DNA from: Octopus sinensis
Taxonomy: Eukaryota
NCBI RefSeq assembly: GCF_006345805.1
Contig: NC_043023.1
Coordinates: 15,376,001-15,440,000 of the forward strand
DNA: 64,000 nt
Direction of reading: 5' to 3'
The stretch's first letter is position 1, and the number at the start of each line of letters is the position of its first letter. Shown one piece after another: positions 17,901 through 63,342 of this stretch. Made by a program: the position numbers and the translations under genes. The notes under the pieces were generated by a model. The model saw only the letters and a program-made list of their open reading frames with translations. It was not told the DNA's origin and did no database searches.

Positions 17901-17984
17901 AATTGAAGAAATTACATATTGTAGAATTGTATTAAAAAGAAACATGGGAACAGGCAGAGAAAATCTGCCTTTTATCATAAGAGA
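14954..17984 (-). mobile_element. Helitron, internally deleted (3.03 kb), with decayed PIF1-like helicase
   Basis: 5' TC (TCTCTTATGATAAAAGGCAG) at 17984, 3' hairpin CCGG-GCAAAT-CCGG then CTAG at 14954, inserted between A and T with no TSD. Helicase motifs FFLDAPGGTGKTF, WDECTMAHK, LLSGDFRQTLPV, RLQFPLRVSFAMSINKSRGQTL at 15129-16400, with stops and frameshifts. Confidence 0.93.
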
Positions 17985-18278
17985 TTATTACTGTTATTTC
18001 TTTATTTTCTGATAGGATGTTGTCTCAGTTTTAGACACAGCAAATGATTTTAGCTCAATAGAGAGCATAGGATTGGTTAAAATTCGAAAAATTAAACTAC
18101 ATTAAACAAACAAATAACAATTTTCTCAAGAAAGCCAAGAGAAAAAAATGTTTTATTTTGATACATTCTACCAGTATACGAAGTTTGAAAGTGTTTAGTT
18201 AACTAGGAATTTTGTTGAAAACTGCCATTCAAAAGGAAAAGATCCGGCTTAGAGTGATTTACTGCAGATATTACAGTT

Positions 18279-19268: not shown

Positions 19269-19299
19269 TTTACAGATATCACATTGATGTGATAATTTT

Positions 19300-20929
19300 C
19301 TGTTTCTTTTGTCATCTCTTGAGGATTCATTATTGTTCTATAGTATACAAACACAAAATATAATTTTGCTTCCTTTTTTTATATATTTCTATTGCTTATA
19401 TTTCCAGCAGTTCCGATCTTCATCAATTTCTGAAGATGATACAAACACCTTTGCAGATATCTCCCGCTCCAAACAGAATGTGAAAGACTTTAGCAAATAT
19501 TCCAGGCAATGATGGAAACAAATGTTGCCATCAATTCAGAAGAAATATTTCACAGTTTTCCACCATAGACAAATCGTATAAAAAGAGTTATGTCAAATAT
19601 TTATAACATCTTCCATTAGATGATCAATATTCATGAAGTATCACTAACATTTCACCTCCTGAAATGACACAGAAACAGAAGAAGATATAGGAAAGACTTA
19701 AAAAGCAGAGATTCAACTATAAAAAAAATATAACTACATCTTCATAATGATAAACTGTGGATATAATCCTTTAATTTGTCTTTGAAATTTATTTATGGTA
19801 ATTTATAATATGGTAACCCTTTTGTTACCATATTTCTGCTGAGATTCAGTGTGTTTCTTTCAATTATTTTAAATATAATAAAGAATTTAGTAAACTAACT
19901 TAGTTATCATTCAACTAGTGTTAGGAACATAAATTGTAACTAAGGTTTGGTGGAAGATTTTAATTCAAAACTTATGAAAACAAGACATTTTACCACAGAG
20001 CCAGAGCCCGTTTTGGCCGGGTTAGTAACAAGAGGGTGTGGTCTTTGAAATTTATTTTGTTATTAAAATTATATGATACAACCTTGTGTAATGTCTACAT
20101 TTACACGGACTTCAGTTCCTCTTCCTTCAGATATTATGTAAAACATTATCCCTTTAGTGTTCAGATTATTCTGTTAAATGTAATTCTTTTTCACTCAAAT
20201 TGTTTTGAATTAATCATGCAATATCTTATAGCTTTGAGGTTTCAATGATGTGATTGTTTATTTCTAGAATGTCAATGTAGGTTAGGTGTGAGAGGCCAGA
20301 TACCACCAGTTTGAATATAAAACATGCAGAATATCTGGGCCTGATATGGCCGGTTTAAACAATAAAGGGTTCAACTATAGGATATTGGACAATAATATGA
20401 TAAGTGAATACTGTTTAACCCTAGGTTATCCCTGACTGAGCAGATCTATTATTGAAATTAGGTAATGTTCATGATTGTTACAACTTCTGTAACAGATCAA
20501 ACATAAACATAAACTACAATTTAGTGAACCAACCCATCATGACTTTTCCTCTCGTAACTTTATCAATAATAAAAACAAACTGCACTCACATATGTTGAAG
20601 GTGTGGTCACTAATTTAGAGAAAGTGTTCTGTGAATTGACGTATGAAGATTAGAGCCAGGACAGAATGGCGATCCTTCGGTATAGGTACACACGTGACTC
20701 TGTTTACGTTTCTGAAGATAACAAAAACACTTTTCTCTCCCCCCCCCCTACATATAAAGAAACACCTTTTTGAAATGTATCCAGTACTTCCGAAGTACAC
20801 CGGTATTTATACCGTAAGATCGCCTTTCTTTTTAAAACAAAGTAAATAAAACACAAAAGCATAGGTACTACTAGCGAAGACTGGACCCGGTACGCGCTAG
20901 CTAGTCGTAAGTAGTCGTTCCTACAACGA
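19300..20929. repeat. 5' region of C, inverted paralog of the 5' region of G (43727-45290)
   Basis: Mirror ORFs 20036-20248/44425-44637 and shared MITE B and C fragments. Confidence 0.92.
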
Positions 20930-23264: not shown

Positions 23265-24374
23265 ATGAATAGTCTGGAGATGTTAAAAGAAAGAGAAAAG
23301 TTATCAGACCAATGTGATATCTGTAAAAAGACTTTTTCTAATAAGGGAAATCTCACTGTTCACAAATTCATTCATGCAGGGGGGAAACTATATCATTGTG
23401 ATATCTGTGGTAAGTCATTCTCTCGAAAAAGTCACCTTACTCATCACAAATACACTCATACTGGAGAGAAACCATATCAGTGTGATACCTGTGGTAAATC
23501 ATTCTCTCAAAGGACTGTCCTTTCTTATCACAAATTCGTTCATACTGGAGAGAAACCATATCACTGTGATATCTGTGGTAAATCATTCACTCAGAAATGT
23601 AGCCTCACTCATCACAAATACACTCATACTGGAGAGAAACCATATCACTGTGATATTTGTGGTAAATCATTCTCTCAAAAGACTGCCCTTTCTTATCACA
23701 AATTCGTTCATACTGGAGAGAAACCATATCACTGTGATATCTGTGGTAAATCATTCTCTAAAAAATATAACCTAACTAAACACAAATCCATTCATACAGG
23801 AGAGAAACCAAATCAATGTCGTATTTGCGATAAATCATTCTCTCAAAGAAGTTACCTTGATTCTCACATATCCATTCATACAGGGGAGAAACCACATCAG
23901 TGTGGTGTTTGTGGTAAATCATTCTCTCAAAAGAGTAACCTTAATTCTCACAAATACATTCATACAGGTGAGAAACCATATCAGTGTGATATCTGTGATA
24001 AATCCTTTTCATTAAAAAGTTATTTAACTACTCACAAATCCATTCATACAGGTGAGAAACCATATCGATGTGATATTTGTGGTAAATCATTCACTCAGAA
24101 ATGTAGCCTCACTCATCACAAATACATTCATACTGGAGAGAAACCATATCAATGTGATATTTGTGGTAAATCATTCTCTCAAAAGACTGCCCTTTCTTAT
24201 CACAAATTCGTTCATACTGGAGAGAAACCATATCACTGTGATATTTGTGGTAAATCATTCTCTAGAAAATATAACCTTACTAAACACAAATCCATTCATG
24301 CAGGAGAGAAACCATATCACTGTGATATCGGTGCTATATCTGTGGTAAATCATTCTCTCAGAAGAGGTACTTAA
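23265..24374 (+). CDS. C2H2 zinc-finger protein D (369 aa, 12 intact fingers, frameshifted tail)
   Basis: ORF MNSLEM... with 12 fingers. A deletion junction at 24325-24329 shifts only the last ~15 codons. Confidence 0.92.
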
Positions 24375-25362
24375 ATAGACACAAATGCATTAATACAGGG
24401 GACAAACCATAGCACTGTAGTATCTGTAGTAAATTATTCCGTTTAAGAAACTATTTAATTAATTACAAGTCTGCTCATACTGGAGAGAAACTATGTGACT
24501 GTGATGTCTGCAGCAAATCATTCTCTCAGGAATATGCTGTATATACTTATAAACGTATTCATACAGGAGAAAAACTCTATTGGTGTGATATCTGAGGTAA
24601 ATCATTCTCTGTGGAACAATATTGAATTCATCACAAATCCATTCATACAGGAGAGAAATCATATCACTGTGACATCTGTGACAAGTCATTCTTTCATAGA
24701 GAGAAATAATAAACTAAACACAAACATATTCATACAGGAGAAGATTCTTATGACTGTGTAATCTGTGCTAAATCATTCTCTCAATAATCTACCTTAACTA
24801 AACATATACTTATTCATATTGATCAATAACAATATCAATGATAAAACAGATGTCCTGCTGAATAAAATACAGCAAATGTATTACTTTTTACAAAATAAAT
24901 TCATTTTTCACATTTTCCTCATTTGCATCAACTCACTAATTACGATTTGTGTTTTTTATTCAAACAATATTGATTATATTAATTTGGTCTGTTTTCTTGA
25001 GGATATATTATTTTGACACAAATGTATTACACTCCAGTTCCCAGCCATGATCAGTTATCCTCTGCTGGACACACTCAGGGATCCCAGGATCTGCACCCTT
25101 TGTGCTACTGCCCACATATTCTGGCACTAGCTGGAGGCTTATTGCTGTTTGTTACAGTTTTGGGTGTAGAGTGGGAAATATTTTTCAAAAGCCTAATGCC
25201 CCACTCTACCTATGGTTCAAGCACATCCCCGCTCAACCCATGCAAGGGATTATCATCATACTTATTTTTTGATAAATCATTCTGTAGAGCAGGTTTTCAT
25301 GGTCTTGTTCTTACCAGACACCAAGTAGGGATTTATGATGGGCATCTGGTTAGAATGGCACC

Positions 25363-26425: not shown

Positions 26426-28959
26426 TTTTACATGTTTCAGGCATTTGACAGTGGCCATGCTGGAGCACCGCCTTTAGTTGAGCAAATAAACCCCAGGACT
26501 TATTCTTTGTAAGCCTTGTACTTATTCTATTTTTCTCTTTTGCCAAACTGCTATGTGACGGGTGTGTAAACACACCAGCATCAGTTGTCAAGCAATGTTG
26601 GGGGGACAAACACAGACACACAAGCATACATATATATGATAGGCTTCTTTCAGTTTCCGTCTACCAAACCCACTCACAAGGCTTTGGTCGACCCGAAGCT
26701 ATAGTAGAAGACATTGAACCAATGTGCCACATTGTGGGACTGAACCCGGAATCTTATGGTTCATAAGCAAGCTACATACCACACAGCCACTCCTGCGCCT
26801 ATACTCTTTACCCGTTTCAGTCATCTGACCACGGCCATGCTGGAGCACCGCCTTTAATCGAGCAACTCGACCCCAGGACTTATTCTTTTGTAAACCCAGT
26901 ACTTCTTCTATTGGTCTCTTTTGCCGAACTGCTAAGTAACAGGGACATAAACACACCAGCATCGGTTGTCATGCAATGCTAGGGGGACAAACACAGACAC
27001 ACACACGCATATATATATATACACGACGGGCTTCTTTCAGTTTCCGTCTACCAAATCCACTCACAAGGCTTTGGTCGGCCCGAGGCTATAGTAGAAGACA
27101 TTTGACCAATGTGCCACGTTGTGGGACTGAACCCAGAACCTTATGGTTCATAAGCAAGCTACTTACCACACAGCCACTCCTGCGCCTATGTTGAGAAAAA
27201 CAGCAAAATTTCTTTGTAGCATGACAGGTGACAAATTAAATTTCATAGGCGAAATGTGGGGATATGTCACATTTCCAGTGAAAGCATGCAAGGAGAATGT
27301 CTTCATCATTAAAAATGTTGATTATCTGTTTGGTACCTTTTTTTTTTCTTGTTTCAGCCCAGAGCTGCGGCCATGCTGATGCACCGCCGTTTTGTGCTAC
27401 ACTGTTATTACGAAGAACCACCCCCAATATGTGGCACTTGGTGAAGAATGGGGTTTGATATAGCTACTCTCATTTGCACCTCTTGCTGTGAGGTAGGTTC
27501 ATCTGGGACTCTTGACAGGAAGATGTCCAGCTTTGATTTAAAAACCACTGCATCTACTTTGTGGATCATCGTCTAGCGTTCGTTTTCCATGCTAGCATGG
27601 GTTGGATGGTTCAACTGGGGTCTGGGAAGCCAGAAGGCTGCATCAGGCCCAGTCTGATCTGGCAGTGTTTCTACGGCTGGATGCCCTTCCTAACGCCAAC
27701 CACTCAATGAGTGTAGTGTGTGATTTCTATGTGCCACCGGCACCGGTGCCAGATGAGGCTGGCAAACGTCCATGATCGGATGGGGCTTTTTACGTGCCAC
27801 CGGTACAAGGAGCCAGAGGAGGCTGGCAAACGGCCATCTAAACATTTAATACCTTGTGTTTTGTAAATCAAATAATATCAACAAATTATAAAACAAACAC
27901 ATAACAAGAAGAATTTTTGCAGAACAGACGTTATTTTAATGAAATATATCTTGTAATCACCTGAAAAGACACATCTACACTGTTGGATACTCATAAAGCA
28001 ACTCTTCAATATTGCACTCATAAAGGATCAAAGCAAGATGTGTTGAAACAATTGTAGTGATCAATAAATATTCTTGTATCTTCCATTAATTATATCATCA
28101 TCATCTATTTCTTTGCTGCCCACAAGGGGCTAAACATAGAGGGGACAAACAAGGACAGACAAAGGGATTAAGTCGATTACATCGACCCCCCCCAGTGCGA
28201 AACTGGTACTTTATTTATCGACCCCAAAAGGATGATAGGCAAAGTCGACCTTGGTGGAATTTGAACTCAGAACGTAACGACAGACGAAATACCGCAAAGC
28301 ATTTCGCCCGGCCTGCTAACGTTTCTGCATCATCATCTTCGTTTAATGTCTGCTTTGCTTGATGGCATGGGTTGGACGGTTTGACCGGGTCTCTGGGAAG
28401 CCACATGGCTGCACCAGGCTCCAGTCTGATCTGGCAGTGTTTCTACAGCTGGATGCCTTTTTCTCCATGCTGAGCAGGGCCATCTCTCTGACAGGATCTG
28501 TCTTTGGTCTTTGCTAAATTTACTGTATGGTTTTTCAATCCAGATTTTGCTTCCATACCTGAAATTTGTTCTCTAATTGTGGTAGGGATTCAGCAATAAG
28601 AACAAGGTCATCAGCTTGGAAGTGATCCCAAGGGCAGCCAATCTTAAATTCCTTCCTAATGCCAACCACTCCGTGAGTGTAGTGGGTGCATTTTACATGC
28701 CAACAGCACAGGTGCCAGGCAAGGCTGACAACGGCTATGATCGGTTGGTGCTTTTCACCGGCATAGAAGCCAGTCAAGGTGTTGCTGGCATCAGCCATGT
28801 TCGGATGGTGCTTTTTACTTGCCACCGGCACAGGTATCACAACTACAATTTCCATTTGATTTTTTGTTGTTCATGTACTTGACTCAATAGGTCTCCTCAT
28901 ATATAAATGTAAGTTCCATGGATCAAGGTGTAGAATTGTATCAAGTAGAAGCACAAATG

Positions 28960-31121: not shown

Positions 31122-31277
<156 letters not shown>

Positions 31278-31345
31278 TTATGAGTGGACTTATGATTACT
31301 CAAATATTTTCTTACACAGAATGATTTACTGCAGATATCACAGTG

Positions 31346-32566
31346 CTATGATTTCTCTCTTGTATGAATGTATTTGTGTCTATTAAAGTTACTTTTACGA
31401 GAGAATGATTTACCACAGATATCACAGTGATATCGTTTCTCTCCTGTATGAATGTATTTGTGTCTAGTAAGGTTACTTTTTCCAGTGAATGATTTACCAC
31501 AGATATCACACTGATATGGCCTCTCATCAGTGTGAGTAAGTTCATGAACAGTTAAATTACTTCTTAATACAAAGGATTTATCACAGATATTGCAGTGATA
31601 TGGTTTCTCTCCTGTATGAATGGATTTGTGAGAAGTAAGGTTACCTTTTTGAGAGAATGATTTACCACAAATATTGCAGTGATATGGCTTCTCACCTGTA
31701 TGTGTATATTTGTGAGTAGTTAAATGACTTTTTAATGGAAAGGATTTATCACAGATATTGCAGTGATATGGTTTCTCTCCTGTATGAATGTGTTTGTGTG
31801 TAGTAAGGTTACTGTTATGAGAGAATGATTTTCCACAAATATCACAGTGATATGGTTTCTCTCCTGTATGAATGTATTTGTGATGAGTAAGATGATCTTT
31901 CTTAGAGAATGATTTACCACAGATATCACAGTGATATGGTTTCTCTCCTGTATGAGTGTATTTGTGAGAAATAAGGCTACCTTTTCGAGAGAATGATTTA
32001 CCACAAATTTCGCAGTGATATGGCTTTTCATGAGTATGGAAACGTTTGTGTCTAGTTAAATCACTCCTTAGTGAAAAGGATTTATCACAGATATCGCATT
32101 GATATGGTTTCTCTCCTGTATGAATGTATTTGTGAGTTTTAAGGTGACTTTTTTGAGAGAATGATTTACCACAAGCATCACAGTGATGTTGTTTCTCTCC
32201 GGTATGAATGTATTTGTGACAAGTTAGGCCAGTCTTTTGAGAGAATGATTTACCACAGATATCACAGTGATGTGGTTTCTCTCCTGTGTGAATGTATTTG
32301 TGACAAGTAAGGCTACCTTTTTGAGAGAATGATTTACCACAAATTTCGCAGTGATATGGTTTCTCTCCTGTATGAATGTATTTGTGATGAGTAAGATGAT
32401 CTTTCTGAGAGAATGACCTGCCACAGATATCACAGCGATATTGCTTTCCACTTGGATCAATACACTTGTGAACAGAGAGATTTGCTGTATTAGAAAAAGT
32501 CTTTTTACAGATATCACATTGGTCTGATAATTTTTCTCTTTCTCTTGTCATCTCCGGCGGATTCAT
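31346..32566 (-). CDS. C2H2 zinc-finger protein E (406 aa, 13 intact fingers plus degenerate first finger)
   Basis: Uninterrupted ORF. ATG MNPPEM at 32566; the frame stays open upstream to 32698 without an ATG. Confidence 0.93.
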
Positions 32567-33779
32567 TATTCTTCTGCAGTATGCAACACCAAAATATATT
32601 TTTCTTTTCTTCTTTATAAATGTCTTTGTTGATTCAAATACTTCTACTGCTATATTTACAGCAAATCTGATCTTCTCGAATATCTGAAGATAATACAAAG
32701 ACCTTCACAGATTTTTCCAAATTCAAACAGAATGTAAAATACTGGCAATGAAGAAAACAAACGTTCGTATTAATTCCAAAGAAATATTTCACAGTTATTC
32801 ACCATAGATTTGTAATAGAAACAGGGTTATATATATCATTTATAATATCTTCCATTAGTCTTCAAATGATGATCAATATTCATGATGTATCTGATGTAAA
32901 AACTCCTTTATACCACTAACATCTCATATTCTGAAATGACACAGAAACAGTTGAAGATATAGGAAAGACTTCAAAAGCAGAGATTCAACTATAAAAAATA
33001 TTACTACATTTTCAAAATAAAAAAACTGTTTATATAAACCTTAACCTGAATAATTAGTCTCTATACACAGACTTCCGTTCCTATGCCTTCAGATATTATG
33101 TAAAATGTTAAACTACAAAATATTGGACAATAACTTCCTACTATCTTCAGAAATGTGATGAGTCACTGTTGTTTAGCCCGGAATCATCCCTGGCTGAACA
33201 GGTCTATTAATGAAATTAGGTTGGGTTCACGACTTTTAAAATAACAATAATGAAATTACTGTATACAGTGCTCAGGTGCACCACAACTTGTCAAAAGTGC
33301 GTATAAAGTATATGCAGTAATGTACAAATGTATGGGAAGTGAACAGTGTATGAGTCAGATACATGCTTGCGTGTGTATGGAGGGGAGAAAATCAGGTGTA
33401 GTGTTGGCGAATCTGAGGAAGCATGGAAAGAAGCCCGTCGTATATATGTGTATATGTATGTTTATGTGTCTGTGTTTGTCACCCTAAAATCGCTGGACAA
33501 CCGATGCTGGTGTGTTTACGTCCCCATAACTTAGTGGTTCGACAAAAGAGACCGAATAGAATAAGTTCTGGTGTCGATTTGCTCGACTAAAAGGTGGTGC
33601 TCTAGCATGGCCACAGTCAAATGACTGAAACAGAGAGAAGAGATAACTATTAAAGCCAATCATTTTGACAAAATAAACAGCAAATAGTGATACGTAGCAA
33701 GTTATACCTCTATAATAAAGCGATAGACAGCTTCGAATGGACACAAGTAACAAATGGAATGTCTACTGTAATAAAAGAA

Positions 33780-38010: not shown

Positions 38011-38653
38011 TAAGAAGCAAGATGGAAATATTGTCCAATAATATGTAATTTAATCTTTTACATAATATCCGAAGGTAGAGGAGCTGAAGTCTGTGTATAT
38101 GTAGACATTACACAAGGTTGTATCATATAATTTCAATAACAGAATATATTTCAAAGACAACTTAAAGGATTATATCCACAGTTTATGATTATGAAAATGA
38201 AATTATATTTTCTATTGTTGAATCTCTGCTTTTTAAGTCTTTCCTATATCTTCTACTGTTTCTGTGTCATTTCAGAATATGAGATGTTAGTGGTATAAAG
38301 GAGTTTTTACATCAGATACATCAGGAATATTGATCATCACTTGAAGACTAATGGAAGATGTTATAAATAATACATATAACCACGTTTATATAATTTATCT
38401 ATGGTGAAGAACTGTGAAAAATTCCATCTGAATTAATAGCAACATTTGTTTCCATCATTGCCTGGAATATTTGCTAAAGTATTTCCCATTCAGTCTGAAC
38501 TTGGAAAAATCTGCAAAGGTGTTTCTATTACCTTTAGATATTGACAAAGACCAGACTTGTGGAAAATATAACTAGAGAATTATTTGAATCAACCAAGGAA
38601 TATATAAGAAGAACAGGAAAATATATTTTGTGCTTGTATACTATAGAACAATA

Positions 38654-40289
<1,636 letters not shown>

Positions 40290-40899
40290 CACTGTGATAT
40301 CTGCAGTAAATAATTGTGTGTTCAGTATTATTTAACAGATCACAATTCCACTCATGCTAGATATGTCAGTGTGATATCTGTGTTAAATCTTTCTCTGAGG
40401 AATGTGCTATATATACTCATAAATATTTTCTAATAGGAGAGAAGACCTATCACTGTGATATGTATAGTAAATCATTCTGTGTGGAACAATATGTAACTAA
40501 TCCCAAATGCATTCATAAGGGTGGCAAAAAGCACAACACTGTGGCATCTGTGATGTCATTCTCTTGTAATTACTTAACGAAATACAAACATATTCATACA
40601 AGATTGGATTCTTGTGGCTGTGTTATCTTTGGTAAATCATTCTCTCAATAATGTACCTGAACTTAACATATATGTATCCATATTACTCAATAACAATATC
40701 AGTGATATTGTGAATTAATGTAATAAACAGAAAGAAAATTAAAGTTGTCTTACTCTTTTTTCTCTGCTCATTTTATACGCAGAACATTCTACCAAATGTT
40801 GTAATGGTGAGACACACGTAAATTATAGAATTCACAGTGGATCAGTGTATGATAAAAGTCACACACGTCTCCAAACTAACCTACTATAAGCGTTTATTT

Positions 40900-43793: not shown

Positions 43794-45282
43794 TATGCTT
43801 TTGTGTTTTATTTACTTTGTTTTAAAAAGAAAGACGATCTTACGGTATAAGTACCGGTGTGCTTCCGTAAGTACCGGATACATTTCAAAAAGGTGTGTTT
43901 TTATATGTGGGTGGGGGGTGGTTTAGGGTTAGGGGTGGGAGAAAAGGGTTTATGTTATCTTCAGAAATGTAAACAAGGTCACGTGTGTACCCATACCGAA
44001 GGATCGCCATTCTGTCCTGGCTCTACTCTTCATACGTCAATTCACAGAGCACTCTCTAAATTAGTGACCACACCTTCAACATATGTGAGTGCAGTTTGTT
44101 TTTATTATTAATAAAGTTACGAGAGGAAAAGTCATGATGGGTTGGTTCACTAAATTGTAGTTTATGTTTATGTTTGATCTGTTACAGAAGTTGTAACAAT
44201 CATGAACATTACCTAATTTCATTAATAATAGATCTGCTCAGTCAGGGATAACCTAGGGTTAAACAGTAGTCATCATATTATTGTCCAATATCCTATAGTT
44301 GAACCCTTTATTGTTTAAACCGGCCATATCAGGCCCAGATATTCTGCATGTTTTATATTCAAACTGGCGGTATCTGGCCTCTCACACCTAACCTACATTG
44401 ACATTCTAGAAATAAACAATCACATCATTGAAACCTGAAAGCTATAAGATAATGCATGATTAATTCAAAACAATTTGAGTGAAAAAGAATTACATTTAAC
44501 AGAATAATCTGAACACTAAAGGGATAATGTTTTACATAATATCTGAAGGAAGAGGAACTGAAGTCCGTGTATATGTAGACATTACACAAGGTTGTATCAT
44601 ATAGTTTTAATAACAAAATAAATTTCAAAGACCACACCCTTTTGTTACTAACCCGGCCAAAACCGACTCTGGCTCTGTGGTAAAATGTCTTGTTTTCATA
44701 AGTTTTGAATTAAAATCTCCACCAAACCTTAGTTACAATTTATGTTCCTAACACTAGTTGAATGATAACTAAGTTCTTTATTATATTTAAAATAATTGAA
44801 AGAAACACACTGAATCTCAGCAGAAATATGGTAACAAAAGGGTTACCATAAATAAATTTCAAAGACAAATTAAAGGATTATATCCACAGTTTATCCTTAT
44901 GAAGATGTAGTTATATTTTTTTTATAGTTGAATCTCTGCTTTTTAAGTTTTTCCTATATCTTCTGTTTCTGTGTCATTTCAGGAGGTGAAATGTTAGTGA
45001 TACTTCATGAATATTGATCGACATAACTCTGTTTATATGATTTGTCTATGGTGGAAAACTGTGAAATATATCTTCTGAATTGATGGCAACATTTGTTTCC
45101 ATCATTGCCTGGAATATTTGCTAAAGTATTTCACATTCTGTTTGGAGCGGGAGATATCTGCAAAGGTGTTTGTATCATCTTCAGATATTGATGAAGACCA
45201 TAACTGCTGGGAATATCAGCAATAGAAATATATAAAAAAGGAAGCAAAATTATATTTTGTGTTTGTATACTATAGAACAATA

Positions 45283-46755
45283 ATGAATCCTCAAGAGATG
45301 ACAAAAGAAAGAAAAACGTTATTATACCGATGTGATATCTGTAAAAAGACTTATTGTAATAAGAGAAATCTCACTGTTCACAAATTCATTCATGCAGGGG
45401 GGAAGCCATATCACTGTGATGTCTGTGGTAAATCATTCTCTGATAAAAGTCACCTTACTAAACACAATTACATTCATACAAGAGCGAAACGGTATCACTG
45501 TGATATTTGTGGAAAGTCATTCTTTCAGAAGGTTCACCTTACTTCTCACAAATACAGTCATACAGGTGAGAAACCATATCAATGTGACATTTGTGGTAAA
45601 TCATTCTCTCATAAAAGTAGCCTTACTCAACACAAATCCATTCATACAGGAGAGAAACCTTATCAGTGTGATATTTGTGGTAAATCATTCTCTCATAAGA
45701 TTAGCCTTACTTGGCACAAATCCACTCATACAGGAGAGAAACCATATCAGTGTGATATTTGTGGTAAATCATTCTCTGGTAAAAGTAACCTTACGAATCA
45801 CAAATCCATTCATACAGGTGAGAAACCATATTACTGTGATATTTGTGGTAAATCATTCTCCTTTAAGCATAGCCTTACTTATCACAAAGTCAGTCATACA
45901 GGGGAGAAACCACATCCCTGTGATATATGTGGAAAATCATTCTCTCAGAAAATTCACCTGACTTCTCACAAATTCATTCATACAGGAGAGAAACCTTATC
46001 AATGTGATATTTGTGGTAAATCATTCTCCCATAAGCACAGCCTTACTTATCACTTATCCATTCATACAGGAGAGAAACCTTATCACTGTGATATCTGTGG
46101 AAAATCATTCTCTCAGAAAATTCACCTGACTTCTCACAAATACATTCATGCAGGGGAGAAACCTTATCAATGTGATATTTGTGGTAAATCATTTTCTCAA
46201 AAGACTGGCCTTACTTATCACAAATCCGTTCATACAGGAGAGAAACCATATCAATGTGATATCTGTGGTAAATCTTTTTCATTAAAACGTAATTTAACGA
46301 CTCACAAATTCATTCATACAGGTGAGAAACCATATCAGTGTGATATTTGTGGTAAATCATTCTCTCAAATGAGTAGCCTTACTTATCACAAATCCGTTCA
46401 TACAGGAGAGAAACCATATCCCTGTGATATCTGTGGTAAATCTTTTTCATTAAAACGTAATTTAACTACTCACAAATTCATTCATACAGGTGAGAAACCA
46501 TATGAATGTGATATTTGTGGTAAATCATTCTCTCAAAAAAGTCACCTTTCTTCTCACACATCCATTCATACAGAAGAGAAACCACATGACTGTGATATTT
46601 GTGGTAAATCATTCTCTCAGAAGAGAGGCCTTACTAAACACAAATACATTCATACAGGAGAGAAACCTCATCAATGTGATGTCTGCGGAATGTCATTCTC
46701 TCAAAGACGTTACCTTGATTCTCACAAACACATTCATACAGGAGAGAAACCCTAG
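45283..46755 (+). CDS. C2H2 zinc-finger protein G (490 aa, 17 fingers)
   Basis: Uninterrupted ORF from ATG MNPQEM to TGEKP-TAG. Confidence 0.95.
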   Translation: MNPQEMTKERKTLLYRCDICKKTYCNKRNLTVHKFIHAGGKPYHCDVCGKSFSDKSHLTKHNYIHTRAKRYHCDICGKSFFQKVHLTSHKYSHTGEKPYQCDICGKSFSHKSSLTQHKSIHTGEKPYQCDICGKSFSHKISLTWHKSTHTGEKPYQCDICGKSFSGKSNLTNHKSIHTGEKPYYCDICGKSFSFKHSLTYHKVSHTGEKPHPCDICGKSFSQKIHLTSHKFIHTGEKPYQCDICGKSFSHKHSLTYHLSIHTGEKPYHCDICGKSFSQKIHLTSHKYIHAGEKPYQCDICGKSFSQKTGLTYHKSVHTGEKPYQCDICGKSFSLKRNLTTHKFIHTGEKPYQCDICGKSFSQMSSLTYHKSVHTGEKPYPCDICGKSFSLKRNLTTHKFIHTGEKPYECDICGKSFSQKSHLSSHTSIHTEEKPHDCDICGKSFSQKRGLTKHKYIHTGEKPHQCDVCGMSFSQRRYLDSHKHIHTGEKP

Positions 46756-48319
46756 CACTTTAATATCTGCAGTAAATCATTCAAAGTCTATTCATAAAGG
46801 AGACAAACCATATAACTGTGATATCTGTGGTAAATCATTCTCTTGGGAATGTGCTATATATACTCATAAATGTATTTATTCAAGAGAGAAGCCCTATCAC
46901 TGTGATAACTATGCTAAATCAATCTCTGTGGAACAATATTTAGCTAATCTCAAATTCATTCATACAGGAAAGAAACCATAGCACTGTCAGTCTTTTACCA
47001 TGTGGGTTAACTCAACATGAATACATTCATACAGGAGAAAAACCGTAACGCTGTGACATCAGTGATTAATCATTCTCTCGTAATTACTTAACTAAACACA
47101 AACATATTCATACAGGGTAAGATTCTGATGACTGTAATCTGTGCTAAATCATTCTCTCAATAATCTACCTTAACTAAACATATTCTTATTCATATTGATC
47201 TATAAAAATAACTGGCATAAAATAGATGTCTTATCTTTCTTTTACTTGGTTCAGTCATTTGACTGTGGCCATGCTGGAGCATCGCCTTTAGTCGAGCATA
47301 TCGACCCCAGGACTTATTCTTTGTAAGCCTAGTACTTATTCTCTTTTGCCGAACTGCTAAGTTACAGGGACATAAACACACCAGCATCGGTTGTCAAGCG
47401 ATGTTGCGGGGACAAACAAAGGCACACAATCGTACACACACGTGGCACGTAAAAAGCACCATCTGATCGTTGCCGTTTGCCAGCCTCGTCTGGTACCTAT
47501 GTAGGTGGCACGTAAAAAGCACCCACTACACTCATGGAGTGGTTAGGAAGAGCATCCAGCTGTAGAAACACTGTCAGATCCGACTGTAGCCTGGTGCAGC
47601 CTCTTGGCTTCCCAGACTCTGGTTGAACCGTCCAACCCATGCTAGCATGGAAAACGGACGTTAAACGATGATGATGATATATACGACGGGCTTCTTTTCA
47701 GTTTCCGTCTACGAAATCCACTCACAAGGCTTTGGTCGGCCCGAAGCTATAGTAGAAGACACTTGCCCAAGGTGCCACACAGTGGGACTGAACCCGGGAC
47801 CATGTGGTTGGTAAGCAAGCTACTTACCATACAGCCACTCCTACGCCTGGTGAAATAAAATACAGCAATTGTATTACTTTTTATTGAATAAATTAATTGT
47901 TTCCATTTTCCTCATTTGCTTCAACTCATTAATTATGATGTGTGTTTTCCATTCAAATAATATTGATTAAATTAATTTGTTCTATTTTCTTGTGGATGTG
48001 TCATTATCACACCAATATCTGACATTCCAGTTCCCAATTACGATCGGTTGTGTCCTCCTGGACATGTTTTGAGTCTCAGGATTTGCAGTATTTGTGATAG
48101 CAACCCACATATTCTAGAACAAACTGGAGGCCTACTGCTTTTGTCATAGTGTTTGGTGTAGAGTGGATGATACAGCCTACTTATTTTTTGCTAAATCATT
48201 CTGTAGATCCGGTTTTCATGGTCTTGTTCTTACCAGACACCAAGCAGGGATTTATGATGGGCATCTTGGTTAGAATGGCACCTGTTGTGATGAGTGTAGA
48301 CTGGTCCGAGTAAAGTATG

Positions 48320-50016: not shown

Positions 50017-50963
50017 GGTTGTCCAGCGATGTTAGGGTGACAAACACAGACACATAAGCACACACACAAACATACATGTACACATATATACGACGGGCTT
50101 CTTTCCTTGCTTCCTCAGATTCGCCAACACTACACCTGATTTTCTCCCCTCCATACACACGCAAGCATCTATGTGACTCATACACTGTTCACTTCCCATA
50201 CATTTGTACATTACTGCATATACTTTATACACACTTTTGACAAGTTGTGGTGCACCTGATCACTGTATACAGTAATTTCATTATTATTACTTTAAAAGTC
50301 GTGAACACAACCTAATTTCATTAATAGACCTGATCAGCCAGGGATGATTCCGGGCTAAACAACAGTGACTTATCACATTTCTGAAGATAGTAGGAAGTTA
50401 TTGTCCAATATTTTGTAGTTTAACATTTTACATAATATCTGAAGGCAAAGGAACAAAAGTCTGTGTATAGAGACTAATTATTCGGGTTAAGGTTTATGTA
50501 AACAGTTTATTATTATGAAAATGTAGTAATATTTTTTATAGTTGAATCTCTGCTTTTTAAGTCTTTCCTATATCTTCTACTGTTTCTGTGTCATTTCAGA
50601 ATATGAGATGTTAGTGGTATAAAGGAGTTTTTACATCAGATACATCATGAATATTGATCATCGTTTGAAGACTAATGGAAGATATTATAAATAATATATA
50701 TAACCCTGTTTCTATTACAAATCTATGGTGAATAACTGTGAAATATTTCTTTGGAATTAATACGAACGTTTGTTTTCTTCATTGCCAGTATTTTACATTC
50801 TGTTTGAATTTGGAAAAATCTGTGAAGGTCTTTGTATTATCTTCAGATATTCGAGAAGATCAGATTTGCTGTAAATATAGCAGTAGAAGTATTTGAATCA
50901 ACAAAGACATTTATAAAGAAGAAAAGAAAAATATATTTTGGGGTCGTATACTGCAGAAGAATA

Positions 50964-52300
50964 ATGAATCCACCGGAGATGACAAGAGAAAGAGAAAAAT
51001 TATCAGACCAATGTGATATCTGTAAAAAGACTTTTTCTAATACAGCAAATCTCACTGTTCACAAGTGTATCGATCCAAGTGGAAAGCAATATCGCTGTGA
51101 TATCTGTGGTAAATCATTCTCTAAGAAAGAGCATCTTACTCATCACAAATATATTCATACAGGAGAGAAACCATATCAATGTGGTATTTGTGGTAAATCA
51201 TTCTCTCATAGGAGTAGCCTTACTTGTCACAACTCAGTTCATACAGGAGAGAAACCGTATCACTGTGACATCTGTGGTAAATCGTTCTCCCAAAAAAGTC
51301 ACCTTAAAACTCACAATTACATTCATACGGGAGAGAAACCATATCAATACGAGATCTGTGATAAATCCTTTTCACTAAGGAGTGATTTAACTAAACACAA
51401 ACTTTCACATACTCATGAAAAGCCATATCACTGCGAAATTTGTGGTAAATCATTCTCTCGAAAATATAACCTTGATTCTCACAAATACATTCACACAGGA
51501 GAGAAACCACATCAGAGTGATATTTGTGGTAAATCATTCTCTCAAAAAGGTTGCCTGACTTCTCACAAATACATTCATACAGGAGAGAAACGATATCACT
51601 GAGATATATGTAATAAATCCTTTTCAATAAGAAGTTCTTTAACTAAACACAAACTTATTCATGCTCATGAGAAGCCATATCATTGTGATATCTGTGATAA
51701 ATCATTCTCGCGTAAAAGTAATTTTAATAGACACAAATACATTCATACAGGAGAGAAACCACATCACTGTGATATCTGTGGTAAATCATTCTCTCATAAC
51801 AGTAACCTTACTAAACACAAATTCATTCATACAAGAGAGAAACCACATCACTGTGATATCTGTGGTAAATCATTCTCTCATAACAGTAACCTTACTAAAC
51901 ACAAATACATTCATACAGGAGAGGAACCATATCACTGTGATATTTGTGATAAATCCTTTCATTAAAAAGTCATTTAATTACTCACAAACTTACACATACA
52001 GGTGAGAAGCCACATCACTGCGATATTTGTGGTAAAACATTCCCTCATAAGAATAGCCTTACTTATCACAAATCAATTCATACAGGAGAGAAACCATATC
52101 ACTGCAATATCTGTGGTAAATCCTTTGTAGTGAGAAGTAATTTAACTGCTCATGAACTTACTTACACTAATGAAAGGCCATATCAATGTGATATCTGTGG
52201 TAAATCATTCTCTGGAAAAAGTACCCTTAATAGACACAAATACATTCATACAGGAGAGAAACCATATCAGTGTGATATCTGTAGTAAATCATTCTCTTAG
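50964..52300 (+). pseudogene. C2H2 zinc-finger locus H, truncated paralog of E
   Basis: ATG MNPPEM 50964. Cys lost in fingers 5 (YEIC) and 7 (SDIC). TGT>TGA stop at 51600-51602 and a 1-bp deletion at ~51960. Finger repeats continue to ~52300. Confidence 0.9.
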
Positions 52301-58248: not shown

Positions 58249-59198
58249 GGTGCCATTCTAACCAGATGCCCATCATAAATCCCTGCTTGGTATCCGGTAA
58301 GAACAAGACCATGAAAACCTGCTCTACAGAATGATTTAGCAAAAAATAAGTATGATGATAATCACTTGCATGGGTTGAGCGGGGATGTGCTTGAACCATA
58401 GGTAGAGTGGGGCATTAGGCTCTTGAAAAATATTTCCCACTCTACACCCAAAACTGTGACAAACAGCAATAAGCCTCCAGCTAGTGCCAGAATATGTGGG
58501 CAGTAGCACAAAGGGTGCAGATCCTGGGATCCCTGAGTGTGTCCAGCAGAGGATAACTGATCATGGCTGGGAACTGGAGTGTAATACATTTGTGTCAAAA
58601 TAATATATCCACAAGAAAACAGAGCAAATTAATATAATCAATATTGTTTGAATAAAAAACACAAATCGTAATTAGTGAGTTGATGCAAATGAGGAAAGTG
58701 TGAAAAATGAATTTATTTTGTAAAAAGTAATACATTTGCTGTATTTTATTCAGCAGGACATCTGTTTTATCATTGATATTGTTATTGATTAATATGAATA
58801 AGTATATGTTTAGTTAAGGTAGATTATTGAGAGAATGACTTAGCACAGATTACACAGTCATAAGAATCTTCTCCTGTATGAATATGTTTGTGTTTAGTTT
58901 ATTATTTCTCTCTATGAAAGAATGACTTGTCACAGATGTCACAGTGATATGATTTCTCTCCTGTATGAATGTATTTGTGATGAGTTCAATATTGTTCCAC
59001 AGAGAATGATTTACCTCAGGTATCACAGCAATAGAGTTTCTCTCCTGTATGAATACGTTTATAAGTATATACAGCATATTCACAATAGAATGATTTGCTG
59101 CAGACATCACAGTCACATAGTTTCTCTCTAGTGTGAGCAGACTTGTAATTAATTAAACATTTTCTTAAACAGAATGATTTACTGCAGATACTACAGTG

Positions 59199-61836
59199 CT
59201 ATGGTTTTTCCCCTGTATTAATGCATTTGTGTCCATTTAAGTACCTCTTTTGAGAGAATGATTTACCACAGATATGGATTCTCGTGTGTATGAACGTGTT
59301 TGTGATCAGTTAAATATTTTTTTAAACAGAATGACTTATCACAGATATCGCAAGAATATGGTCTCTCTGCAGTGTGAATGTATCTATGAGAGGTTAAACT
59401 GCTTCTAGAAGAAAATGATTTACACAGATATATCACAGGGATATGGATTGTCTCCTGTATGTGTGTATTTGTGATAAGCAAGGCGACTTTTTTCAGAGAA
59501 TGCTACACCACAGATATCACAGTGATATGGTTTCTCTCCTTTATGAACTGATTTGTGATAAGTAAGGCCACTCCTATGAGAGAATGATTTTCCACATATA
59601 TTGCAGTGATATGGTTTCTCTCCAGTATGAATAGGTATATGAGAAGTGAGGCTGCATTTCTGAGTGAATGATTTACCGCAAATATCACAGGGATATGGCC
59701 TCACATTAGTATGAATGAGTTTGTGAGTAGTTAAATAACTTTTTAATGAAAAGGATTTATCACAGATATCACACTGATATGGTTTCTCACCTGTATGAAC
59801 TGATTTGTGATTAGTAAGGTGACCTTTTTGAGAGAATGATTTACCACAAATATCACATTTATATGGTTTCTCTCCTGTATGAGTGTATTTGTGATAAGTA
59901 AGGCCTCTCCTTTGAGTGAATGATTTACCACAAATATCACAGGGATATGGCCTCTCATGAGCATGAGTGAGTTCGTGAGTAGTTAAATGATTTTTAATGA
60001 AAAGGATTTATCACAGATATCACACTGATATGGTTTCTCACCTGTATGAACTGATTTGTGATGTGTAAGGTGACCTTTTTGAGAGAATGATTTACCACAA
60101 ATATCACATTTATATGGTTTCTCTCCTGTATGAGTGTATTTGTGATAAGTAAGGCCTGTCCTTTGAGTGAATGATTTACCACAAATATCACAGGGATATG
60201 GCCTCTGATGAGCATGAGTGAGTTCGTGAGTAGTTAAATGACTTTTTGATGAAAAGGATTTATCACAGATATCACACTGATATGGTTTCTCACCTGTATG
60301 AACTGATTTGTGATATGTAAGGTGACCTTTTTGAGAGAATGATTTACCACAAATATCACATTTATATGGTTTCTCTCCTGTATGAGTGTATTTGTGATAA
60401 GTAAGGCCTGCCCTTTGAGTGAATGATTTACCACAAATATCACAGGGATATGGCCTCTCATGAGCATGAGTGAGTTCGTGAGTAGTTAAATAACTTTTTA
60501 ATGAAAAGGATTTATCACAGATATCACACTGATATGGTTTCTCATCTGTATGAACTGATTTGTGAGTAGTAAGGTTACATTTTTGAGAGAATGATTTACC
60601 ACAAATATCGCAGTGATGTGGCTTCTCACGTGTATGTGTAAGTTTGTGAGTAGTTAAATAAGTTTTTGATGAAAAAGATTTACCACAGATATCACACTGA
60701 TATGGTTTCTCACCTGTATGAACTGATTTGTGATAAGTAAGGTGACCTTTTTGAGAGAATGATTTACCACAAATATCACATTTATATGGTTTCTCTCCTG
60801 TATGAGTGTATTTGTGATGAGTGAGGCTACATTTCTGAGTGAATGATTTACCACAAATATCACATTTATATGGTTTCTCTCCTGTATGAGTGTATTTGTG
60901 ATAAGTAAGGCCTGCCCTTTGAGTGAATGATTTACCACAAATATCACAGGGATATGGCCTCTCATGAGCATGAGTGAGTTCGTGAGTAGTTAAATAACTT
61001 TTTAATGAAAAGGATTTATCACAGATATCACACTGATATGGTTTCTCATCTGTATGAACTGATTTGTGAGTAGTAAGGTTACATTTTTGAGAGAATGATT
61101 TACCACAAATATCGCAGTGATGTGGCTTCTCACGTGTATGTGTAAGTTTGTGAGTAGTTAAATGAGTTTTTGATGAAAAAGATTTACCACAGATATCACA
61201 CTGATATGGTTTCTCACCTGTATGAACTGATTTGTGATAAGTAAGGTGACCTTTTTGAGAGAATGATTTACCACAAATATCACATTTATATGGTTTCTCT
61301 CCTGTATGAGTGTATTTGTGATGAGTGAGGCTACATTTCTGAGTGAATGATTTACCACAAATATCACATCGATATGGTTTCTCTCCTGTATGAATGGATT
61401 TGTGAGTAGTTAAATAACTTTTTAAAGAAAAGGATTTATCACAGATATCACACTGATACGGTTTCTCACCTGTATGAATGTATTTGTGAGAATCAAGGGA
61501 ACTTCTATGAGAGAATGATTTACCGTAAATACGACATTGATATGGTTTCTCTCCTGTATGAATGGATTTGTGTTTAGTAAGGTTATATTTTTTAGAGAAT
61601 GATTTACCACAGATATCACAGTGACGTGGTTTCTCTCCAGTATGAGTGTATTTGTGATGAGTAAGGTAACTTTTTTGAGAGAATGATTTATCACAAATAT
61701 CACAGTAATATTTCTTTCCACCTGGATCAATACATTTGTGAACAGTGAGATTTCCCTTATTAGAAAATGTCTTTTTACAGATATCACATTGGTCTGATAA
61801 CTTTTCTCTTTCTTTTAACATTTCCAGACCATTCAT
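59199..61836 (-). CDS. C2H2 zinc-finger locus I (31 finger units; 617-aa ORF covers the first 21, later frameshifts)
   Basis: ATG MNGLEM 61836, ORF to 59983. A 1-bp deletion at ~59990, a net +1 shift at ~59430 and an 11-bp deletion at ~59275. The family stop TAG is at 59199-59201. Confidence 0.92.
59778..60532 (-). repeat. 252-bp (3-finger) tandem repeat x3 inside I
   Basis: Units start at 59778, 60029 and 60281. Confidence 0.95.
60336..61368 (-). repeat. 504-bp (6-finger) tandem duplication inside I
   Basis: Fingers 6-11 match fingers 12-17; offset exactly 504. Confidence 0.95.
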
Positions 61837-62309: not shown

Positions 62310-63342
62310 GATACTCATGACACAAGACATTACTTTCGTCTATAATGACCTGAGTCATAAATCTAATACTTTCTCTAGTTTAGTTTCAATGCACCCAAAC
62401 AAACAAAAGGAAAAGCAGTGTAAATAACGGACAGAGTCAAAACTATTGAAAAGGTTGCAAGACGCAATGAAAATTTTAGGAAAAAAGGAAATAAGTAAGA
62501 AATAACTGCAAAATTTTACCGATGAGTGTGCTAAATTATAAGGCATCAACCACAGTGAAAATTTTGTTGATCCAACAAATGCATTGGTGCACATACAGAC
62601 GATAGAGAGATTGTGGGGGTCAGTTAAGAGATCAGTTGTTCGCCCAGGCATTCGTGCCTGTTACTTAAAGCAATACCTCTCCAAGTTCCTATTTATGGAA
62701 AGCATCAAACCTGCTGCCAAGAAAATACACGTATTCTTATTGGCAGCAGCAAGTCTTTATCTTGATAATTTTTTCCTCCAACTCATCTCATTTCTTTATC
62801 ATCAATGTCGATGGACCACTCAAAGAGGTATGTATACATTATCATTTTCGTAACATAATTTCTGTAGTATTTCAAGATGTTTCTGACACGTATTTTGATT
62901 CATATAGCGAAGATCTGACATTTCTTCACTTGTTCCACTTTTTTTTTTTTTTTTGCGAAATATGTACAAAAATACGGAGTTTATGATTCATGTGTGAGTG
63001 TGTGTTCTTGATACTCGTTTAGAACAAGTAGTTTTACACCAATTACACTATTTTTTCTTAGTTTAAAGGCCGTGGACTGAAGATGTGAAATTTCCGAAGC
63101 CTCTCCCCCACCCCCCTTTCGCGAGCGCGCATTTTTTTTTTATCATATTCGTTTAGAGCAATTTGTTTTACACCTATTACGCTATTTTTGTTTTTGTGCC
63201 CGGGTCAGACGGTTTCGGAAATTCCCGATGTAAATTTCCGAGGCCTCTCCCCCACCCCTCTTTCGCGAGTGCGCATTTTTTTTGTCATATTCGTTCATAT
63301 TTTTTTTAGTTTCTTTGAATGGTGTAACGCTTTAGTTTAACA
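62310..63342 (+). mobile_element. Merlin relic, paralog of 3030-4245
   Basis: ORF 62584-62853 (VHIQTIERLWGSVKR), same terminal repeat and GTTAATTC flank. Confidence 0.8.

Follow-up and report, generated by a model that had tools for sequence, protein, structure and literature searches.

The window (the whole 64-kb stretch of DNA that was analysed) contains nine C2H2 zinc-finger loci, all of which begin with a leader of the form MN.(L/P)EM.KEREKLS followed by a finger designated finger 0. Across the window we counted 131 matches to the C2H2 pattern, 125 of which lack stop codons and 26 of which are regex-intact and lie in locus I, a count consistent with the figure of ~140 fingers given in a preliminary description of this DNA. 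The fingers of locus I are 28 residues long, have the form C-X2-C-X12-H-X3-H and are joined by TGEKP-type linkers, and are thus canonical tandem Krüppel-type fingers; in Pfam the locus matches zf-C2H2 (E=1.7e-111) and zf-H2C2_2 (E=3e-157). The parts of the locus are as follows.

58779-61836, minus strand: locus I, a C2H2 zinc-finger gene, one of nine in the octopus cluster
59983..61836, minus strand: locus I open reading frame as assembled, 617 aa (ORF listing and translation)
59420..59779, minus strand: older fingers F24-F27 and stop codon, ending …TGDNPYPCDISV, stop (frame translation and finger list)
58779..59419, minus strand: remnant tail of decayed fingers, interrupted by stop codons and frameshifts, that ends in YDCVICAKSFSQ, stop, STLTKHILIHINQ, stop

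The assembled reading frame consists of a leader of ~16 residues, a degenerate finger 0, fingers F1-F20 and a premature stop inside F21. The stop that follows F27 (after …TGDNPYPCDISV) is at a position equivalent to the end of locus F, and a relic of decayed fingers like that at 58779-58862 in locus I is also found 3′ of loci A, B and D (at 1120-1203, 7793-7876 and 24749-24832). Frameshifts are present in loci A, B, F and H as well, several of the loci being frameshifted pseudogenes, and a Helitron-type PIF1 helicase fragment, whose best matches are in Octopus bimaculoides, is interspersed in the cluster together with other transposon remnants.

Pfam searches with the products of loci I, D and G returned zinc-finger families only, with no PR/SET, KRAB (PF01352) or SSXRD domain, and the ORFs in the 2.1 kb upstream of locus I had no Pfam match. 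Rfam and tRNA scans of the window likewise gave no match. Exact look-up of the products of locus G and locus I (617 aa) found no record in the protein collection, and a homologue search with the full 617 aa was dominated by generic vertebrate zinc-finger proteins and returned no orthologue. A search with the N-terminal 93 aa returned only short Octopus zinc-finger proteins at about 60% identity, one of which (P0246) led to the syntenic Octopus vulgaris locus (L001). Locus I is presumably expressed, and its product presumably binds DNA.

The cluster is syntenic with a region of the O. vulgaris sequence OX597842.1 that is 90-94% identical to it; the comparison covers loci A-C, and the orthologue of locus I is expected about 45 kb further along (near 24.36-24.37 Mb by extrapolation). 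The O. vulgaris annotation gives sister locus A's orthologue a single exon, coding for 406 aa and starting at the same ATG. The locus A orthologues differ in number of fingers (10 versus 13), and fingers of the TQKY(C/S)L type number three in the window locus and one in O. vulgaris. Locus C has 11 fingers in the window versus 19 in its orthologue, the latter having repeats of its own. In-array expansion therefore recurs in this cluster.

Block repeats within the locus I array

Comparison of the fingers of locus I base by base resolved a six-finger repeat and a three-finger repeat, made up of finger types that are lettered A to F independently of the loci.

60871..61374, minus strand: six-finger repeat copy 1, F5-F10, types A B C D E F (base comparison)
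60367..60870, minus strand: six-finger repeat copy 2, F11-F16 (base comparison)
60787-60870, minus strand: hybrid finger F11, B type at its 5′ end (TATAAA, YKC) and A type in its body
60115..60366, minus strand: three-finger unit U1, F17 (B), F18 (E) and F19 (F) (base comparison)
59864..60114, minus strand: three-finger unit U2, F20 (B), F21 (E) and F22 (F), 251 nt (base comparison)
59780..59863, minus strand: finger F23, B type, with Tyr>Asn at +6 (59812) and the ancestral ACT kept at +5

The six-finger repeat has a period of 504 bp and extends from 60337 to 61369 (2.05 copies), with one mismatch in 529 bp. This mismatch (61164 versus 60660; CAT versus TAT on the coding strand) gives SSKTHL versus SSKTYL at helix position +3, and it is the single difference that the preliminary description had reported between the copies. 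When the repeat is placed in phase with the fingers (60871-61374 versus 60367-60870) the second codon of the first finger (R versus K) contributes two extra differences, which mark the duplication breakpoint. The two copies are alike but for +3 of the C finger, where copy 1 has CAT (His; 61164), and the breakpoint codon, where it has CGA (Arg; 61370-61371). Near-identity passes the 504-bp boundary by 30 nt (60337-60366), a 5′ segment common to B- and A-type fingers. Because of this extension and the hybrid structure of F11, we attribute the repeat to unequal crossing-over between the B finger that follows F and finger A, an origin of the 504-bp copy of which the hybrid junction finger is diagnostic.

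In the E-F-B phase the three copies of the 252-bp repeat lie at 60283-60534, 60031-60282 and 59780-60030. They differ at exactly seven sites and by one 1-bp deletion: −1 (L/S/L), +3 (Y/H/H), a linker residue (E/Q/E), two adjacent sites in the +2 codon (A/T/R), a synonymous site in the +5 Thr codon (ACA/ACA/ACT) and +6 (Y/H/N). The preliminary description had tallied the same seven sites, with five in contact codons, one in a linker and one synonymous, and the same indel. We note that the E-F-B phase produces conflicting shared derived states and apparent double substitutions, both of which are removed by the B-E-F phase. In the B-E-F phase U1 has two changes of its own (E finger −1 Leu>Ser at 60248 and linker Glu>Gln at 60207), U2 has B finger +6 Tyr>His (60063), F finger +2 Thr>Arg (59907) and the 1-bp deletion, and three derived states are common to U1 and U2 (the synonymous A at B finger +5, E finger +3 His and F finger +2 Thr).

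The base missing from U2 is a G that followed an A5 run; its loss, between 59990 and 59991, falls within the +2 codon and shifts the frame such that a stop is reached two codons later (SLKII, stop at 59983-59985). The preliminary description recorded the indel without its effect on the frame. Since six whole fingers with all of their zinc ligands can still be read beyond the deletion, up to the locus-F-type stop, the deletion is either very recent, perhaps in one allele only, or a sequencing error.

The repeat copies are 98.4-99.8% identical, whereas identity between the flanks of locus I and loci A, B and D is only about 89%, and the copies are therefore far younger than the gene duplications. 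Judged by the 90-94% identity of the syntenic O. vulgaris region, they are probably younger than the species split too.

Substitutions in the young fingers and their causes

The repeat units fit a consistent tree that needs no multi-nucleotide events. Polarised on this tree, nine substitutions have occurred, of which seven are nonsynonymous and in contact codons (−1, +2, +3 and +6), one is in a linker and one is synonymous. Were mutation uniform, so strong a concentration in contact codons (seven of nine) would have a P of 4e-6 to 6e-6, which bears out the preliminary claim that the copies differ mostly at DNA-contact codons. The excess of seven contact nonsynonymous changes over one synonymous change indicates a contact omega above 1 with P of 5e-4 to 3e-3, a test of nine events, and correction for nine loci raises this P to about 0.004-0.03, nominally significant. 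All-pairs per-column piN/piS was dropped as a test of selection because old finger pairs are saturated, and was replaced by minimum-spanning-tree counts on close finger pairs. For locus I these counts give omega_contact of about 7-8 (P 0.001-0.014), and the 7:1 event count gives about 14, bounded below near 2 (one-sided), the denominator being one synonymous change among nine substitutions in all. The changes to Arg at +2 of F22 and to Asn at +6 of F23, two of these seven in contact codons, lie downstream of the frameshift and are untranslated if the assembly is right.

Fingers of this family have common backbones and differ mainly at contact codons, so that sequence copied from paralogous fingers elsewhere, by ectopic gene conversion or by short-read mis-polishing, would land at those codons with neither new mutation nor recent selection. 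In keeping with such copying, one toggle, between TAT and CAT, makes up three of the seven changes in contact codons; finger types C and E have the context AAAAA(G/C)T(C/T)ATTTAACTACTCAC in common and both toggle between Tyr and His at +3. Candidate donors for E −1 Ser, E +3 His and C +3 His/Tyr lie nearby, with matches of 11-15 nt in C fingers and at 31719-31733 in locus E (E −1 Ser matches C fingers over 11 nt, and E +3 His matches a locus E finger over 15 nt), and non-allelic conversion is the process favoured for Prdm9 (Oliver et al. 2009, PMC2779102). However, five of the seven variant sites have no donor at an exact context of at least 11 nt within the 64-kb window that was searched, outside which lie more than a thousand octopus zinc-finger genes, and this argues against local gene conversion. 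Moreover, each change is a lone base flanked by at least 30 nt identical to the ancestral copy, whereas tracts from diverged finger types should carry synonymous differences (pS between types in locus I is 0.06-0.73, and 0.6-0.7 between its two backbone groups) and only one synonymous change is present in total. We consider this explanation unlikely, if the best of the alternatives.

Relaxed constraint alone, in which contact sites are neutral, the backbone is purified and locus I is a chance extreme singled out post hoc, we consider quite unlikely. The preliminary description had staked its claim on dN/dS at −1/+2/+3/+6 exceeding that at other positions, and this it does: window-wide, contact omega is 1.44 versus 0.47 at other positions, with an excess of nonsynonymous changes in contact codons (binomial P 2e-15). 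The values for single contact positions (1.15-1.67) are not significant after correction, and once locus I is set aside contact omega comes to about 1 (0.87-1.29), not significantly above it, as relaxed constraint predicts. The highest omega of all positions (1.88) belongs to a non-contact residue between the Tyr and the first Cys, meaning that fast sites are not just base contacts, and the frameshifted pseudogenes in the cluster are in keeping with weak constraint. In addition, the young duplicates in O. vulgaris locus C have 3-5 synonymous changes, and their nonsynonymous changes number 2-3 in contact codons and 2-3 elsewhere, an omega of about 1. Nevertheless, with the backbone filtered at omega 0.45 and contact sites neutral, contact codons would receive at least seven of nine substitutions with a P of 4e-5 to 1.3e-4, and the 7:1 excess is nominally significant after the correction for nine loci. 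Positive selection on specificity, as proposed in the preliminary description, is a probable cause in locus I, where contact dN/dS appears to be well above 1, but is not significant outside it; against cluster-wide values of about 1 to 1.4 for contact omega and about 0.45 for the backbone, locus I is an outlier, and one that rests on few events.

A third possibility is that the repeats are mis-assembled, or that locus I is a pseudogene whose differences are meaningless. Consistent with this, the 504-bp copies are one base apart, the deletion that truncates the frame sits beside an A5 run, loci A, B, F and H are frameshifted too and the 617-aa product is absent from the protein collection. Against it, the hybrid junction and the nested, phylogenetically consistent differences fit real unequal exchange, an independent chromosome-level assembly of O. 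vulgaris has similar in-array expansions in the same cluster, seven contact changes in nine are not expected from random decay and the post-deletion frame is open across six intact fingers. We therefore regard an artefact or a dead gene as very unlikely.

Least probable is a PRDM9-type minisatellite undergoing continuous homogenisation of its backbones with positive selection at contacts, a reading in the direction of the preliminary description, for although the array, like Prdm9 (PMC2779102), has identical or near-identical fingers that vary at −1, +3 and +6, only 8.3% of finger pairs in locus I exceed 90% nucleotide identity (0-12.7% in the other eight loci), compared with 100% in mouse Prdm9 (Oliver et al. 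2009, PMC2779102), pS between types reaches 0.73, adjacent fingers are 60-80% identical (mean identity in the locus 77%), high identity does not reach beyond the 3- and 6-finger blocks, which have a recombination junction, and the gene is one of nine cluster paralogues with no SET, KRAB or SSXRD domain in its product or in the ORFs of the 2.1 kb upstream. Both "PRDM9-like" and "concerted evolution" are thus descriptions that these data contradict: the backbones are identical because the 3- and 6-finger blocks were recently duplicated, that is, through the youth of the copies, with homogenisation uninvolved.

Taken together, the best explanation, which we hold with moderate confidence, is that a birth-and-death octopus cluster has given rise to locus I, a lineage-specific poly-C2H2 zinc-finger gene in which young block duplication was followed by diversifying selection at contact codons. 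By this explanation the array exon grew recently by unequal crossing-over or replication slippage in in-register 84-bp finger units, with duplication first of a B-E-F three-finger block and then of an A-B-C-D-E-F six-finger block. The new fingers then gained single-base substitutions almost exclusively in the four DNA-reading codons, for which diversifying selection on binding specificity would be the best account, and the 1-bp deletion now truncates the assembled frame inside the second B-E-F unit. A stronger claim, which we put forward only tentatively and think doubtful, is that locus I is an active gene caught in the course of adaptive re-targeting, with contact replacements fixed at at least ten-fold the synonymous rate among fingers ~1-2% diverged.

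Comparison with known zinc-finger systems

Duplication of fingers within an array followed by divergence of contact residues is an established mode of evolution in KRAB-ZNF, FiNZ-ZNF and PRDM9 genes, and coleoid cephalopods have undergone one of the largest expansions of C2H2 zinc-finger genes outside vertebrates. Locus I evolves in this known manner and reveals no new mechanism.

Like PRDM9, locus I has recently duplicated fingers that differ at −1, +3 and +6 and, on a count of nine events, a very high apparent dN/dS at these positions, and array length varies between related species in its cluster. Unlike PRDM9, it lacks PR/SET, KRAB and SSXRD domains in its product and in the ORFs of the 2.1 kb upstream, it belongs to a multigene cluster, 8% of its finger pairs rather than all of them exceed 90% identity, it duplicates blocks of 3 and 6 fingers rather than single fingers, and its +2 position varies as well.

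Locus I belongs to the lineage-specific C2H2 expansions of octopuses (Albertin et al. 2015, as cited in PMC12988792; Holzinger et al. 2025, PMC12513265) in that it lies in a tandem cluster of many-finger genes, nine loci per 64 kb, that is syntenic with O. vulgaris OX597842.1 and interspersed with transposon remnants. The base-contacting positions are the most variable across the fingers of the window, as they are in an entropy analysis of octopus fingers that also predicted transposon binding for octopus zinc-finger proteins (Wells et al. 2023, PMC10547256). In the octopus zinc-finger papers compared here we found neither dN/dS at the level of fingers nor an analysis of in-array duplication for cephalopods, and Holzinger et al. 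(2025, PMC12513265) call a ZNF-transposon arms race an open question, with no mention of positive selection.

There are further parallels with the KRAB-ZNF clusters of mammals (Nowick et al. 2011, PMC3126818) and the FiNZ-ZNFs of cyprinids (Wells et al. 2023, PMC10547256). As in those families, the cluster shows birth and death with many pseudogenised neighbours, arrays commonly diverge by gaining and losing fingers (as the unequal finger numbers of orthologues show), nonsynonymous change is faster at contact than at other residues (contact omega 1.44 versus 0.47) and contact residues appear to be under positive selection in recent paralogues. The differences are that locus I is of mollusc lineage, has no KRAB or FiNZ domain and has only a leader of ~16 residues. 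By analogy with these families, selection may have been driven by changing targets such as transposable elements, which would then be the putative targets of locus I. The arms race is stated as an open question (PMC12513265), and locus I offers a candidate, a concrete test case with dated, polarised and contact-specific changes in freshly duplicated fingers. If locus I were indeed re-targeting adaptively, it would combine a tempo of PRDM9 grade with the absence of SET and KRAB domains, and it would provide direct finger-level evidence for an arms race between mollusc zinc-finger proteins and their targets, probably transposons.

The zinc-finger gene cluster and its neighbourhood

Nine arrays of 84-bp units, lying on either strand of the window, yield C2H2 zinc fingers when translated, and each array opens with the leader MN.(L/P)EM.KEREKLS, followed by a degenerate first finger.

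Zinc-finger loci in the window
1120-2592, minus strand, locus A
about 6490-7876, plus strand, locus B
18279-19310, minus strand, locus C
23265-24832, plus strand, locus D
31125-32698, minus strand, locus E
38630-40370, plus strand, locus F
45259-46987, plus strand, locus G
50832-52300, plus strand, locus H
58779-61836, minus strand, locus I

Pfam searches of the proteins encoded by loci I, D and G returned zinc-finger families only. Window positions 1-20858 are collinear with a syntenic chromosome segment of O. vulgaris (L001; OX597842.1:24407831-24430299) at 90-94% identity, which places the window in a close octopus relative of O. vulgaris that is distinct from the assembled genome. In the O. 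vulgaris annotation, the locus A orthologue is a gene of one exon and 406 aa with the same ATG. A decayed relic, Y/DDCVICAKSFSQ*STLTKHILIHI(D/N)Q*, is common to the 3′ sides of loci A, B, D and I (1120-1203, 7793-7876, 24749-24832 and 58779-58862, respectively), which indicates that whole genes were duplicated as units together with their dead finger tails. Loci A and B lie in inverted relative orientation. Flank identity between locus I and loci A, B and D reaches only about 89%, so that the gene duplications far predate the copies within the locus I array, which are 98.4-99.8% identical.

Finger number also changes from species to species. In O. vulgaris, the locus C orthologue (L001 19293-20888) has 19 fingers versus 11 in the window; its adjacent fingers are 81-95% identical and form repeated blocks of their own (THKHRL / SDKS(N/H)L / HISSL). 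At locus A, three tandem TQKY(C/S)LTHH fingers (1880-2131) correspond to one TQKCSLTHH finger in O. vulgaris (L001 4741-4824), which has extra fingers at this locus that are absent from the window.

Among the elements between the loci is a stop-interrupted PIF1/Helitron-type helicase ORF on the minus strand (15129-16142), part of which (15474-16142) best matches Octopus bimaculoides at 82% identity. Comparison of 14072-18251 with L001 18834-19850 leaves about 3.2 kb of the window without a counterpart in the syntenic O. vulgaris interval and, because the helicase ORF lies within it, this stretch probably came from a lineage-specific insertion of a transposon into the cluster. A tandem element of ~143 bp (…CCGAGGCCTCTCCCCCACCCC…TTTCGCGAGCGCGCATTTTTTTT…) lies 5′ of both locus A and locus I (3830-4197 and 63080-63270) and had no match in Rfam and tRNA scans. 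The interval that separates locus D from locus E holds two copies of a 387-bp unit with 87% identity (26427-27189).

Recent duplications within locus I

In gene order, with fingers numbered along the array and finger types given as letters, locus I reads F0-F4, ABCDEF, ABCDEF, BEF, BEF, B E′ F′ and older fingers. Positions 60337-61369 hold 2.05 copies of a 504-bp, six-finger unit, whose two copies differ, as the preliminary description had it, at a single base (61164 versus 60660; His/Tyr at helix +3 of the type-C finger). The three 252-bp copies span 60283-60534, 60031-60282 and 59780-60030, and the seven variable sites and 1-bp deletion given for them in the preliminary description were reproduced site by site.

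The second type-A finger (F11, 60787-60870) opens with a B-like TATAAA (YKC) on an A-type body; the first (F5) opens with TATCGA (YRC). Near-identity of the 504-bp copies reaches exactly 30 nt (60337-60366) into the B finger after the second copy, a segment common to A-type and B-type fingers. The hybrid F11 and the 30-nt overrun are the trace expected if finger A had exchanged unequally with the B finger that comes after F, and such a preserved crossover junction argues for a biological origin of the 504-bp duplication.

For the 252-bp repeat, B-E-F is the best phase and one that requires no double hits. We polarised the states of its two successive units, U1 (60115-60366) and U2 (59864-60114), against the corresponding fingers (types B, E and F) in the 504-bp units.

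Derived states in the B-E-F units
U1 and U2 in common: B +5 synonymous A, E +3 His, F +2 Thr
U1 later: E -1 Leu>Ser, linker Glu>Gln
U2 later: B +6 Tyr>His, F +2 Thr>Arg, 1-bp deletion
F23: B +6 Tyr>Asn

With the +3 change in finger C of the 504-bp pair, the total is nine substitutions: seven nonsynonymous at contact codons, one nonsynonymous in the linker and one synonymous. A TAT<->CAT (Tyr/His) toggle makes up three of the seven contact-codon changes (61164/60660, 60492/60240 and 60315/60063), at +3 or +6 in three finger types; both residues are common at these positions across the finger family.

Substitutions at contact codons

Chance expectations were derived from the real codons of the ancestral fingers at transition:transversion ratios of 1 to 4. 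The probability that an accepted change is a contact-codon replacement is 0.10-0.11 under uniform neutrality (P for at least seven of nine, 4e-6 to 6e-6) and 0.15-0.18 with a backbone omega of 0.45 and neutral contact sites (P 4e-5 to 1.3e-4). Set against the one synonymous change, the seven contact replacements give P 5e-4 to 3e-3 for a contact omega >1; the point estimate from these events is about 14 and its one-sided lower bound is near 2, and a minimum-spanning-tree count restricted to locus I gave about 7-8 (P 0.001-0.014). The case for selection at locus I rests on these nine events.

The variants may instead derive from donor fingers elsewhere in the genome, or be polishing errors introduced via cross-mapped reads. 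In a donor search of the 64-kb window only, E -1 Ser had an 11-nt match to type-C fingers and E +3 His a 15-nt match to a finger of locus E, but at five of the seven variant sites the derived allele lacked an exact context of at least 11 nt elsewhere in the window. Every change is a lone single base amid ancestral sequence, whereas tracts copied from donors with many synonymous differences would be expected to bring such differences along.

Across the 125 intact fingers in the window, amino-acid entropy peaks at -1, +2, +3 and +6. Omega was computed on spanning-tree edges between fingers at most 8 nt apart, against the pooled synonymous rate.

Omega by finger position
-1: 1.15
+2: 1.67
+3: 1.63
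+6: 1.33
+5: 1.24
Zinc ligands and Phe: about 0
Codon 2 (Tyr-X-Cys, non-contact): 1.88

Pooled contact omega was 1.44 versus 0.47 elsewhere (P 0.008 for contact omega >1; P 2e-15 for contact enrichment among replacements), so that contact dN/dS does exceed that of other positions, as the preliminary description had proposed. Codon 2 of the 28-codon unit (Q/H/R/K/P/E) had the highest omega among close finger pairs, above every contact position (nominal P 0.002). Without locus I, contact omega was 0.87-1.29, not significantly >1. In an independent set of young duplicates from the O. vulgaris locus C array, replacements number 2-3 at contact codons and 2-3 elsewhere, next to 3-5 synonymous changes, which gives a contact omega of about 1; this array is more homogenised than locus I despite that value. 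Locus I is an outlier within the cluster.

Reading frames and likeness to known systems

The 1-bp deletion, whose shift of the frame the preliminary description had missed, removes a G after an A5 run in a +2 codon (between 59990 and 59991) and leads to SLKII* with a stop at 59983-59985, leaving an assembled ORF of 617 aa (59983-61836). The downstream frame is open to 59420 across six fingers that keep their zinc ligands, and locus F stops at the equivalent point (…TGD(K/N)PYPCDI…); this leaves two readings of the deletion, a very recent event or a sequencing error. Beyond 59420 lies a tail of decayed former fingers, present in loci A, B and D as well. Four more loci carry frameshifting indels: A (about 2470-2480), B (6697-6781), F (38948-39027 and 40120-40202) and H (51930-52012). 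Locus A, frameshifted here, is intact in O. vulgaris (406 aa). These frameshifts stem from genuine birth-and-death pseudogenisation or from a degree of assembly indel error; a 4-bp deletion among them points to real pseudogenisation in the cluster, and others fall at short homopolymers.

Locus I had been read as PRDM9-like, with homogenised backbones under concerted evolution and positive selection at contact codons. Homogenisation of Prdm9 is measured as the share of finger pairs with >90% nucleotide identity, and in mouse Prdm9 all pairs exceed this value, above every other mouse ZNF gene (Oliver et al. 2009, PMC2779102). In locus I the share is 8.3% (0-12.7% in the other eight loci), mean finger identity is 77%, neighbouring fingers are 60-80% identical and pS between finger types is 0.06-0.73; high identity is seen only within the 3- and 6-finger blocks of recent origin. 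Pfam searches of the locus I product and of ORFs within 2.1 kb upstream found no SET or KRAB domain, the upstream ORFs giving no match. The contact-site excess in young copies thus stands, the homogenised, PRDM9-like array does not, and the likeness to PRDM9 is limited to where young copies differ.

Most likely, unequal crossover recently expanded an octopus ZNF array that is lineage-specific, and the specificity residues of the new fingers then took up diversifying substitutions; the array also carries the frameshift, very recent or artefactual. The latest cephalopod-specific study is without a selection analysis and leaves the arms-race idea as an open question (PMC12513265). Finger gain and loss within arrays is already established in primate KRAB-ZNFs (PMC3126818) and zebrafish FiNZ-ZNFs (PMC10547256), as is positive selection at those residues of recent paralogues that contact DNA; locus I therefore represents no new mechanism and is useful as a test locus.
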